From contig OZ218962.1 in NCBI GenBank assembly GCA_965112735.1, positions 372,001-436,000 on the forward strand: a stretch of 64,000 nt of DNA. The letters are read 5' to 3'. Below are positions 28,985 through 37,166 of the stretch, piece after piece (positions within the stretch are counted from its first letter, which is position 1; every line of letters starts with the position of its first letter). Source of the DNA: Phaeosaccion multiseriatum (Eukaryota > Protista > Ochrophyta, other classes). The notes beneath the pieces are model-generated. The model was not told the origin of the DNA, ran no database searches, and saw only the letters and a program-made list of their open reading frames with translations. Position numbers and translations under genes: made by a program.

Positions 28985-29962
28985 CTAGCTTGCGTCGCCG
29001 TCCTTCCTGAACACGAGGAAGCCCCACCGCAGAGAGTCAGTCTTGGCGGCGTCGACCCAGTGGCCCAGGCCTGTGAGCATGCTGGTCGCGAAGCCCTCTG
29101 AGACCCCGTCCATGGCTCCACTGCGTCGCTTGGCCAGCAAGGCCTCGTGGACGGCGGAGTAGTGCTCGGCCAAGTTGGCTGTGTGGTCTTCGAAGCGCAC
29201 AAAGCTCAGCCCGTTCTCCTTCGCGGCGGCCTTGTACGTGGCCGGAGAGCCGAGGTTCTCGAGCTGAATGCGCTGGAACACAGCGCCCAAGTCCTCCGCG
29301 CTTGCCGTGTCCGCCTGCATAATGTCTGAAAACACCATATACCCGCCGGGCTTGAGGATGCGGGCCGCCTCTGCGATGGCCTTGTGGCGCAGGGAGCCCG
29401 CATGCAGGAGGGCGTCCTGAGAAACCACCAAGTCGTGCGAAGCGGCGGGCTCCTCCGTGTCGAAGAAAGACAGCGGCTTGGGGCACAGCACCTTGTCGGA
29501 CAGGCCCGCGGCCCGGGTCAGCTCCCGCGCGTGCTTATTGTTCTGCTCGGACAGGTCCACACACAGCACAGTGCAGCCGTAGGTGGTGGCGGCATAGCGC
29601 GCCGTGCCCGCGTAGCCCGACCCCATGTCGCACATTCGGCTCTCCGAAGTGAGACCCCCCTGGCTGGTCTTGATCACTTCGAAGAGCCGCCGCATAGCCC
29701 GGTCGCTGGCCTCCTTTATCCTATCGTCGTTATCGCGGCTGCCGCCGAACTTCTTACGCTCCATGCCCTCGTACAGCCCCACGTGGATGGACTCTCCCCC
29801 CCATACTGTCTGATAGAATATGAAGGCGTCATCCGAGTCGTAATAGTTTTGCGCAACTTTGTTCAGCTCCTCCGCCGTTGTGGAGCTGGTAGTACTGCCG
29901 TTCGTGCTGGTCATACTACTTAGGTCGCAGCTGCTGCCATTAATACTGCTCGTCGTAGACAT
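28985..29962 (-). CDS. Intronless class I SAM-dependent methyltransferase of the sarcosine/dimethylglycine N-methyltransferase (SDMT)-like family, 325 aa
   Basis: SDMT-family motifs YYDSDDAFIFYQTVWGGESIHVGLY, motif I DMGSGYAGTARY, SQDALLH, LKPGGYMVFSDIMQ and C-terminal WGFLVFRK. The substrate cannot be determined from sequence alone. Confidence 0.88.
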   Translation of the reverse strand: MSTTSSINGSSCDLSSMTSTNGSTTSSTTAEELNKVAQNYYDSDDAFIFYQTVWGGESIHVGLYEGMERKKFGGSRDNDDRIKEASDRAMRRLFEVIKTSQGGLTSESRMCDMGSGYAGTARYAATTYGCTVLCVDLSEQNNKHARELTRAAGLSDKVLCPKPLSFFDTEEPAASHDLVVSQDALLHAGSLRHKAIAEAARILKPGGYMVFSDIMQADTASAEDLGAVFQRIQLENLGSPATYKAAAKENGLSFVRFEDHTANLAEHYSAVHEALLAKRRSGAMDGVSEGFATSMLTGLGHWVDAAKTDSLRWGFLVFRKDGDAS

Positions 29963-30461
29963 TGTTGTTGTTTCTTTGGGTGATGAAACGTGTCCAGGAC
30001 CTTCCTTTCAGCGGAAGCAGGAACGTGTCTATAAAAAAACCCAGATGCACTACCCTTTCTCTCGTTGTTTTCTTCCACGCTACTTCTTCTCCAGCGAATG
30101 ATGGCGGCGGCTTGTGGTGCGTTGTGTGTCTCGATATTTTTAATGATGTGTGTGCGTCCGCGCGGCGACGAGAGTAATGAATGGCGCCCTAAGCACTAAT
30201 AGCCCTTACGTAAGCTTATGCCGAATTTTAGGGGCGCTCGTGACCAGATCTCCACAAAGAACGGGCATATCATATCCGTAGAGAGAGAGTGCTGCTGTTA
30301 ACAAAGAGGAGAGGGGGGACGCACGCTCACGCTCAGGTGAGATTGCAGCAGCAGGACGAGGAAGCACCGTAAAGGAGCGAAGGAGCGCTTGCGAGAGAGA
30401 ATACAGTGAGGACGCTATCTACGCCACAGACAGAACATCACAGGCACAAACAAGAGTCACC
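29963..30461. promoter_or_regulatory. Candidate bidirectional promoter between the methyltransferase and MTHFR::SAHH
   Basis: The two divergent ATGs are 499 bp apart, and the palindrome CTTACGTAAG (30205-30214) sits at the midpoint. Confidence 0.5.
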
Positions 30462-36500: not shown

Positions 36501-37166
36501 GTGACTTGTGATGTCATGAGAGTGTGGGTGCGTGTATGTGTTGTGTGTGTGTGTGTGTGTGTGTGTGTGTGTGTGTGTGCTGGCGAGGACTTTTATCCCC
36601 CAACCAACCCAACCCCCCCTACCCCCCCCGCCCCCGCCCCAGGTCGACATGTTCACCTTCCCCAGCGGCAAGTCCATCATCCTCCTTGCGGAGGGCCGCC
36701 TCCTCAACCTTGCTTGCGCCACCGGGCACCCTTCCTTCGTGATGAGCGCGTCCTTCACCAACCAGACGCTGGCCCAGATCGAGCTGTGGAGGGAGAGGCA
36801 CAGCGGCAAGTACGCCACGGGAAGGGTCTACGTGCTGCCCAAGGTTAGTGGGTGTGTTGGTGATACATGGGTGGGAGTAAGTCAGTGAGTGGGTAAGTGG
36901 AGGCATGATTGCCCTCCTCTCACCCCCCACCCCCCACCCACTCTCTCCGTCACCCATTCAAGCGCTCACTCACCCGTCTTCTCCCCATCCCTCCCTCCCT
37001 ACACGCCTCTACTCTTTCTCACAAATGGCAGTTCCTGGACGAGAAGGTGGCCCGGCTGCACCTGTCCTCCCTCGGAGTGCGCCTCACCACACTCAGGCCA
37101 GAGCAGGCCGAGTACATTAATGTGAGTCAGGAGGGACCCTTCAAGCCTGAGGCCTACCGCTACTAG
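30462..37166 (+). CDS. MTHFR::AHCY: Fusion protein, ~853 aa: methylenetetrahydrofolate reductase catalytic domain plus full-length S-adenosylhomocysteine hydrolase. Exons 30462-30581, 31015-31218, 31432-31519, 31703-31809, 32082-32255, 32498-32637, 32984-33044, 33379-33678, 34411-34512, 34806-34992, 35252-35523, 35757-36011, 36209-36424, 36643-36843 and 37032-37166
   Basis: MTHFR motifs: [58 protein letters not shown] and HFYTLN. SAHH motifs: [87 protein letters not shown] and YRY*. All 14 introns are GT-AG and phase-consistent, and the spliced length is 2562 nt. Confidence 0.92.
33616..37166 (+). other. AHCY: Adenosylhomocysteinase (SAHH) portion of the fusion gene, of the type carrying the ~40-aa catalytic-domain insertion
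   Basis: Begins at DFKVAD in exon 8. Catalytic and NAD-binding motifs are intact, and the insertion HEGVKAE...[10 protein letters not shown] is present. Confidence 0.93.
33862..34400. repeat. (CCCAA)n pentanucleotide satellite in intron 8 of MTHFR::SAHH
   Basis: Directly visible. It generates the spurious PTQPN and GLGWV ORFs in the ORF track. Confidence 0.95.

Follow-up and report, generated by a model that had tools for sequence, protein, structure and literature searches.

A methyltransferase gene of the sarcosine/dimethylglycine class head-to-head with an MTHFR::SAHH fusion gene in the alga Phaeosaccion multiseriatum

Does an osmolyte-type methyltransferase gene that lies head-to-head with a gene of the methyl cycle form a dedicated metabolic unit with it, or is it the lineage-specific neighbour of a general housekeeping gene? 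The question is raised by two genes of the ochrophyte alga Phaeosaccion multiseriatum (assembly GCA_965112735.1), located in a stretch of 64,000 nucleotides (contig OZ218962.1, positions 372,001 to 436,000 of the forward strand) that is referred to here as the window and numbered from its first letter. On the minus strand lies a gene for a methyltransferase dependent on S-adenosylmethionine (SAM), which we place in the SDMT class, and on the plus strand a gene in which MTHFR is fused to SAHH, the enzyme that hydrolyses S-adenosylhomocysteine (SAH). The initial annotation, made from the sequence alone, had taken the two for a co-regulated unit supporting high-flux synthesis of betaine or dimethylsulfoniopropionate (DMSP). 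Our analysis inclines us to a more reserved view, namely that a general methyl-cycle fusion gene stands beside a lineage-specific betaine-type methyltransferase gene, a dedicated osmolyte unit being plausible and unproven. The features of the pair are as follows.

28985-29962, minus strand: predicted SDMT-class SAM-dependent methyltransferase, 325 residues, intronless (open reading frame, Pfam, NF041675, 2o57, tree and class residues)
29963-30461: divergent spacer, 499 bp between the start codons (sequence read)
30462-37166, plus strand: MTHFR::SAHH fusion gene, 15 exons, 853 residues (spliced alignment to P0121)

Class of the methyltransferase

The methyltransferase is encoded by an uninterrupted reading frame from ATG to stop, with an in-frame stop just 5' of the ATG, and its product matches the Pfam families Methyltransf_11, Methyltransf_25 and CMAS. 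NF041675, an SDMT model of 278 positions, is covered from position 8 to 278 with a score of 212 bits, compared with 156 bits for DsyGD and 140 for DSYE. The SDMT chain 2o57 of Galdieria sulphuraria, 297 residues long, aligns through its residues 3-294 with residues 17-321 of the methyltransferase (E 5e-48); SDMT activity of the Galdieria protein is stated in a passage of PMC6629376 that cites McCoy 2009. Since the reading frame is intact and the alignment to both NF041675 and 2o57 is near full-length, we regard this as a complete, intronless gene of the SDMT family. The protein begins with 30 Ser/Thr-rich residues and has no signal peptide; it is presumably cytosolic. Its G+C content at third codon positions (GC3) is 0.82, against 0.83 for the fusion gene, and relative synonymous codon usage in the two genes is correlated at 0.81, which argues that the methyltransferase gene is native to the genome.

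Its closest database proteins, P0001 and P0002 from Logan contigs, are only 50% identical to it. The nearest named homologues belong to brown algae and other ochrophytes, the best being that of Ectocarpus at 43% identity, and no diatom-named protein is among the 120 best homologues. Among named organisms the closest SDMT-like gene, that of Ectocarpus sp., has multiple exons and is repeated in tandem, in about four copies, on contig L010 (10500-32400).

For comparison with the enzymes of DMSP synthesis, reference copies were retrieved through a short DsyG DNA motif in genome contigs, followed by a profile search. Compared by eye with the sequences of PMC11306096, P0158 (Oscillatoria DsyGD) shows no difference, and neither does P0172 (Zarconia DsyG); P0185 (Nitzschia inconspicua DSYE) is near-identical to its counterpart, and P0246 (Exanthemachrysis DSYE) agrees with its own but stops short of it at either end. 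The methyltransferase is 28-33% identical to these four characterised proteins and 41-50% identical to proteins on the SDMT side. In an unrooted IQ-TREE phylogeny of 80 rows, the SDMT side is parted from the DsyG/DSYE side by a branch of length 1.04 with 100% support, and the methyltransferase falls on the SDMT side, within a eukaryotic and environmental clade of ten rows (99% support) that also holds P0001-P0008 and the two-domain protein P0014. This clade is joined to that of the bacterial SDMTs, in which the SDMT domains of fused GSMT-SDMT proteins are also found. The extra N-terminal methyltransferase domain of P0014, tested for likeness to GSMT as in a GSDMT, was not recognisably GSMT.

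We further defined 13 discriminating positions that are conserved within, and differ between, bacterial SDMT on the one hand and DsyG plus DSYE on the other. The methyltransferase has the SDMT state at 11 of them (Y40, W54, D183, L186, R192, H267, Y268, V271, G298, W302 and L311), and Galdieria 2o57 shares most of these states, as judged by eye from the printed alignment. Cumulatively, the tree, identities and residues place the predicted enzyme in the SDMT class, outside the DsyG clade and DSYE clades A-E. Betaine-type N-methylation is thus its most likely activity, and DMSP synthesis is unlikely. Of the two products offered by the initial annotation, betaine is in keeping with the SDMT class seen in tree and residues; DMSP fits poorly with a protein whose class residues are SDMT-type and whose place in the tree is not within the DsyG/DSYE clades.

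Because the Joint Genome Institute (JGI) gives many proteins on the DsyG/DSYE side the name 'sarcosine/dimethylglycine N-methyltransferase', automated annotation fails to part betaine enzymes from DMSP enzymes; SDMT-like annotations mix N-methyltransferases of betaine synthesis with S-methyltransferases of DMSP synthesis, and a short list of residues is able to separate them. In the course of this work, DsyG-like genes were encountered at L004:3488-5026 (minus), L007:146-790 (minus), L006:657-1565 and L008:5553-6449 (minus). A metagenome-assembled genome (MAG) labelled Trichodesmium sp. has a DsyGD-like two-domain gene (methyltransferase plus PF04115), for which a binning error is possible; Trichodesmium is listed among DMSP producers without a known S-methyltransferase (PMC11306096). 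Single-domain DsyG-like genes occur in Nodularia harveyana UHCC-0300, where the gene adjoins a 2-hydroxyacid dehydrogenase, and in a Microcoleaceae MAG.

The fusion gene and its relatives

The fusion gene was modelled with the environmental homologue P0121 as guide, and its parts, all on the plus strand unless noted, are these.

Exons 1-8: 30462-30581, 31015-31218, 31432-31519, 31703-31809, 32082-32255, 32498-32637, 32984-33044, 33379-33678
Exons 9-15: 34411-34512, 34806-34992, 35252-35523, 35757-36011, 36209-36424, 36643-36843, 37032-37166
30462-33504: MTHFR catalytic part, residues 1-340, exons 1-7 plus 126 nt at the start of exon 8 (PF02219)
33379-33678: junction exon 8, with MTHFR tail, linker and SAHH head (continuous frame)
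33505-33615: linker of 37 residues, 341-377 (linker alignment)
33616-37166: SAHH part, residues 378-853, end of exon 8 to exon 15 (PF05221, tblastn)
33860-34384, no strand: (ACCCA)n tandem repeat of about 104 copies in intron 8 (Tandem Repeats Finder)

The model runs from an ATG at 30462 to a single terminal stop at 37166 with the frame intact and GT-AG borders at all 14 introns. Together with the methyltransferase reading frame it bears out the arrangement described initially, an intronless SDMT-family gene on the minus strand and MTHFR::SAHH on the plus strand with starts 499 bp apart. That the two enzymes are one protein is most directly seen in exon 8, which encodes the last 42 residues of MTHFR, the 37-residue linker and the first 21 residues of SAHH in one frame without a stop. 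PF02219 matches the exon-8 piece of reading frame as well as the relatives of the protein, and stand-alone short MTHFRs are 50-57% identical to the MTHFR half. The SAHH half is recognised by PF05221, bacterial SAHH aligns with it in tblastn at 55-70% identity over residues 11-433, and PF05221/PF00670 are found in the relatives. The gene model contains HFYTLN in the MTHFR half and a C-terminal KPEAYRY in the SAHH half, which we take to be among the hallmark motifs of MTHFR and SAHH, respectively. The MTHFR catalytic domain, a TIM barrel, and SAHH, with its substrate-binding and NAD-binding domains and its C-terminal tail, are both complete in the predicted protein. The C-terminal SAM-binding regulatory domain of the eukaryotic type is absent: the MTHFR domain ends at residue 340 and is followed by the linker and SAHH.

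A 504-residue open reading frame at 33082-34596 was rejected as a gene; it is an artefact that reads through the intronic (ACCCA)n repeat and contains one real exon, that of the join from MTHFR to SAHH. Intron 7 holds a (CA)x21 tract at 33304-33346, and this and the simple repeat of intron 4 (31810-31924) break short-read contigs.

Relatives of the fusion were sought by a search restricted to the junction exon, which found proteins with both PF02219 and PF05221/PF00670. A search of representatives with the junction exon returned mostly fragments, and only two or three long ones have both halves. The DNA contexts of the fusion relatives are as follows.

L001/L002: JGI metagenome contig of 23.9 kb plus a Logan contig; 70.6% identity (residues 56-853); a single intron, close to the 5' end
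L012: 497-kb ENA contig of 72% GC; 67% identity; fusion intronless
L011: 2.9-kb contig; 57% identity; single 838-residue reading frame with short flanks, mRNA-like in shape

All three identities extend over nearly the entire length of the protein. The MTHFR-SAHH junction is uninterrupted in L001, L012 and L011, and because intron structures and GC contents differ, we regard the relatives as independent genomes with the same architecture. Further members form clusters P0128-P0141 of environmental contigs, for the most part of mRNA length, many of them of 2.8-2.9 kb and some with ERR171xxxx run accessions, and the family as a whole falls into two groups whose linkers differ in sequence and are similar in length. 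A scan of metagenomes around the junction gave no new fusion locus, only stand-alone MTHFRs and bacterial SAHH-MTHFR neighbours; SAHH followed by MTHFR on the same strand was present in 21 of the 80 metagenome loci, including L024, L031, L035 and L042. A description of an MTHFR::SAHH fusion was not found in the literature search, and the fusion appears to be undescribed in print, though present in public databases. The architecture is conserved in several protist lineages and occurs in environmental data, and it puts an SAH-hydrolysing enzyme where eukaryotic MTHFR has its SAM-sensing regulatory domain. Another one-carbon fusion on a short MTHFR is seen in the environmental proteins P0144 and P0146 (810-815 residues), which combine SHMT (PF00464) with MTHFR (PF02219).

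Linkage of the pair and its possible meanings

Synteny was examined at L001/L002 and L012 for the fusion, with flanks of about 6-10 kb on each side, and at L009, L010 and L013 for relatives of the methyltransferase, by gene calls combined with tblastn. At the fusion loci no methyltransferase was found by tblastn within about 6-10 kb; L001 has a cNMP-binding protein as the neighbour of the fusion, and L012 has V-ATPase subunit a and Nup85. Near the methyltransferase relatives of L009, L010 and L013 there is no MTHFR or SAHH; L009, on a different contig, stems from the metagenome sample that also gave L001. The initial annotation had proposed a co-regulated unit and had named absence of conserved linkage in relatives as evidence against it; such linkage is missing from all of these loci. 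The adjacency of methyltransferase and fusion appears to be specific to this lineage, and the fusion predates the pairing.

In P. multiseriatum itself the pairing is continuous in the assembly, as four runs of a single sample yield Logan contigs that match 28900-31809 without a difference, a range that takes in the methyltransferase, the spacer and exons 1-4 of the fusion. These contigs contain introns and hence represent DNA; as the runs probably derive from the source sample, they check the assembly and are not independent evidence. The spacer (51% GC, against about 59% for the window) has no notable repeats and nothing unusual; both 5' untranslated regions lie in it, and presumably a shared or overlapping promoter region as well. 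In the 64-kb window, tblastn found no MetH-type methionine synthase, SAM synthetase (MetK), bacterial-type GSMT or PfkB kinase; MetE was not searched. The initial statement that the window lacks methionine synthase and SAM synthetase thus holds for the MetH type and for SAM synthetase. Other genes recognised in the window are unrelated to methyl or osmolyte metabolism:

16405-19051, minus strand: protein kinase over at least two exons
38001-40667, minus strand: 888-residue open reading frame with a weak match to glycosyltransferase family 1/28
47737-48612, plus strand: Piwi-domain exon

On balance we favour, with reservation, the view that the locus combines a general methyl-cycle fusion gene with a lineage-specific betaine-type methyltransferase neighbour. 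The methyltransferase, as a cytosolic SDMT-class N-methyltransferase, would carry out the late SAM-dependent methylations to glycine betaine or a similar small betaine, and each turnover would free SAH, which would in turn inhibit the enzyme; for SDMT, an I50 of 0.15-0.40 mM SAH has been reported (PMC3176816). The SAHH half of the fusion would convert SAH into adenosine and homocysteine, and the MTHFR half, catalytic-only and free of a SAM-sensing domain, would make 5-methyltetrahydrofolate (5-methyl-THF), homocysteine and 5-methyl-THF being the two substrates of a methionine synthase presumably encoded elsewhere. The three-enzyme logic put forward initially, in which SAH from the methyltransferase is cleared by SAHH and methyl groups come from MTHFR, is sound in itself. 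Shared regulation is common where divergent genes start within a few hundred bases of each other, and some co-expression of the two genes is therefore likely; the 499-bp spacer would probably give some shared transcriptional control, tying methyltransferase output to methyl-cycle capacity in the manner of the betaine clusters of prokaryotes. Since its relatives keep the fusion among ordinary housekeeping genes, it most likely serves the methyl cycle in general instead of being accessory to the methyltransferase. The data show the structure of both genes, the existence and conservation of the fusion, the SDMT class of the methyltransferase and the lack of linkage in relatives; we infer the substrate and localisation of the methyltransferase, the shared regulation of the pair and the housekeeping role of the fusion.

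Several observations weigh against this view. With regard to the class of the methyltransferase, the branch linking its eukaryotic clade to the bacterial SDMTs has a length of 0.63 and the clade has no characterised member; the remaining two of the 13 discriminating positions, A188 and I214, each flanking invariant residues, show the DsyG/DSYE state; and in an approximately unbiased (AU) test, forcing the methyltransferase to the DsyG/DSYE side (lnL -30.7, p 0.12) was not significantly rejected. Its 212 bits on NF041675 also lie under the curated equivalog cut-off of 550 bits. This is a very narrow cut-off, for P0084, a GSMT-SDMT fusion protein whose GSMT domain passes the threshold of its own model, reaches only 276 bits with its SDMT domain and so is under 550 as well. 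As tblastn detected no GSMT within the window, a route from glycine needs a gene outside it. With regard to linkage, the fusion is available in no more than two independent genomic contexts, both at 67-71% identity, and closer relatives may keep the pair together. Lastly, the chance adjacency of an SDMT-class gene with a gene for SAHH plus MTHFR is roughly estimated at about 1e-4 per genome (one methyltransferase, some 15,000 genes), a figure which argues for more than neutral adjacency.

It is this last estimate that bears on the possibility that the pair is a selected, co-regulated unit of two genes and three enzymes, in which the fusion clears SAH and resupplies methyl groups for high-flux glycine-betaine synthesis. 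We consider such a unit doubtful, yet keep it as a serious minority explanation because a chance meeting with an enzyme set of the Halorhodospira type is improbable. Besides the unlikelihood of chance adjacency by that rough estimate, it would account for the head-to-head arrangement with only 499 bp between start codons, for the equally high GC3 of the two genes, and for a set of SDMT, SAHH and MTHFR that matches the cluster of Halorhodospira (PMC7824335) and in part those of Methanohalophilus (PMC3176816) and Natronogracilivirga. One may imagine, equally tentatively, an operon-like unit in a eukaryote, with a bidirectional promoter from which an osmolyte N-methyltransferase and a bifunctional MTHFR::SAHH are switched on together by osmotic or nitrogen stress; a cluster of the Halorhodospira type would then have been independently rebuilt, and homocysteine and 5-methyl-THF would be delivered together to methionine synthase to keep up a very high methyl flux. 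Were the coupling true, it would be a rare eukaryotic instance of a metabolic enzyme in physical association with the machinery that recycles its cofactor, convergent with an arrangement of halophilic bacteria and archaea, and would indicate which gene underlies the making of betaine-type osmolytes in this alga. However, the fusion predates the pairing, and no methyltransferase lies near it in L001/L002 and L012, the relatives of the methyltransferase are unlinked to MTHFR or SAHH even where, as with L009, they come from the sample that yielded L001, and GSMT, SAM synthetase and MetH were not found in the window. Moreover, SAHH serves all SAM-dependent methyltransferases, and a dedicated role therefore needs a second, housekeeping copy.

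The two further explanations depart from betaine altogether. One is that the methyltransferase is an S-methyltransferase of 4-methylthio-2-hydroxybutyrate (MTHB), whether DSYE, DsyG or TpMMT-like, and that the pair supports DMSP synthesis. DsyG and DSYE do share a broad SDMT-like superfamily with it, JGI attaches SDMT labels to many of them, and the states of A188 and I214 and the AU result could be read in this sense. Nevertheless, we hold it to be very improbable, given that identity to characterised DsyGD, DsyG and DSYE is so low, that MTHB methyltransferase activity is reported to be lacking already in DsyG-like proteins of about 39% identity (PMC11306096), that the methyltransferase lies across the long and fully supported branch, and that most class positions, Y40, W54, D183, L186, H267, Y268 and W302 among them, are SDMT-type; nor was a reductase for 4-methylthio-2-oxobutyrate (MTOB) or a decarboxylase seen near the gene. 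The other explanation, that the enzyme acts on a different small molecule or lipid and that its adjacency to the fusion arose neutrally and by accident in a compact genome, seems improbable to us, though less so than a role in DMSP synthesis. It gains from a clade without a characterised member, from a score under the curated SDMT cut-off, from the domain of P0014 that is not a recognisable GSMT, from the lack of conserved linkage and from the unrelated protein kinase, glycosyltransferase and Piwi-domain neighbours, but it has to contend with full-length similarity to a characterised SDMT, with the retention of SDMT-class residues and with the low prior probability of this adjacency.

Comparison with known systems

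Considered enzyme by enzyme, the methyltransferase resembles the SDMTs (Galdieria 2o57, bacterial proteins and those fused to GSMT) in fold family, in full-length alignment at about 40-44% identity, in 11 of the 13 class positions and in its single domain of about 280 core residues. It differs from them in belonging to a separate eukaryotic clade with P0001-P0008 and the Ectocarpus homologue, in having Ala188 and Ile214 where bacterial SDMT has Ser and Pro, in its added 30-residue Ser/Thr-rich N-terminal extension and in having no GSMT partner in the window. With DsyG, DsyGD and DSYE (PMC11306096) it shares the broad SDMT-like superfamily, similar size, algal occurrence and the universal motifs Y41, F49, Y50, G55, H60, the D112-G-G SAM motif, H187, D213 and M215, whereas identity is only 28-33%, the position is on the opposite side of the main split of the tree and the class residues are SDMT-type.

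The MTHFR half of the fusion has the catalytic domain and motifs of canonical eukaryotic MTHFR; in contrast to the latter, the regulatory domain of about 300 residues is absent and SAHH stands in its place. The same two enzymes are kept together in bacterial ahcY-metF neighbourhoods, where, however, each has a gene of its own and SAHH precedes MTHFR, whereas the fusion is one protein in the order MTHFR then SAHH with a 37-residue linker between them.

The grouping of betaine genes with methyl-cycle genes has clear precedents in prokaryotes. In Methanohalophilus the gene order is sahh-sams-gsmt-sdmt (PMC3176816), and in Halorhodospira a GMT-DMT-MAT-SAHase-MTHFR cluster occurs with methionine synthase elsewhere (PMC7824335). 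Of three bacterial SDMT loci that we opened, one had methyl-cycle genes and the other two had none; the one, Natronogracilivirga saccharolytica L015:2880-14247, has MetH, a GSMT-like methyltransferase, SDMT, a 313-residue unknown protein, MetK, a PfkB kinase and SAHH in about 12 kb and thus has a nearly complete methyl cycle around its betaine genes. The initial remark that some halophilic prokaryotes cluster gsmt/sdmt with SAHH and SAM synthetase is borne out by these three organisms. In the diatom Thalassiosira, an SDMT-like methyltransferase, SAM synthetase and SAHH are all raised by salinity (PMC3986220). The algal locus departs from the prokaryotic clusters in being a divergent eukaryotic pair and not an operon, in having SAHH and MTHFR as one polypeptide, in the absence of GSMT, SAM synthetase and MetH from the 64-kb window and in a pairing that is not conserved in the relatives examined. 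The likeness to them lies in an SDMT-type gene that adjoins SAHH and MTHFR, as in Halorhodospira, in a methionine synthase that is elsewhere in Halorhodospira and, in its MetH type, outside the algal window, and in the same rationale of SAH removal and methyl resupply. The pair is, in these terms, a eukaryotic variant of a known prokaryotic arrangement.

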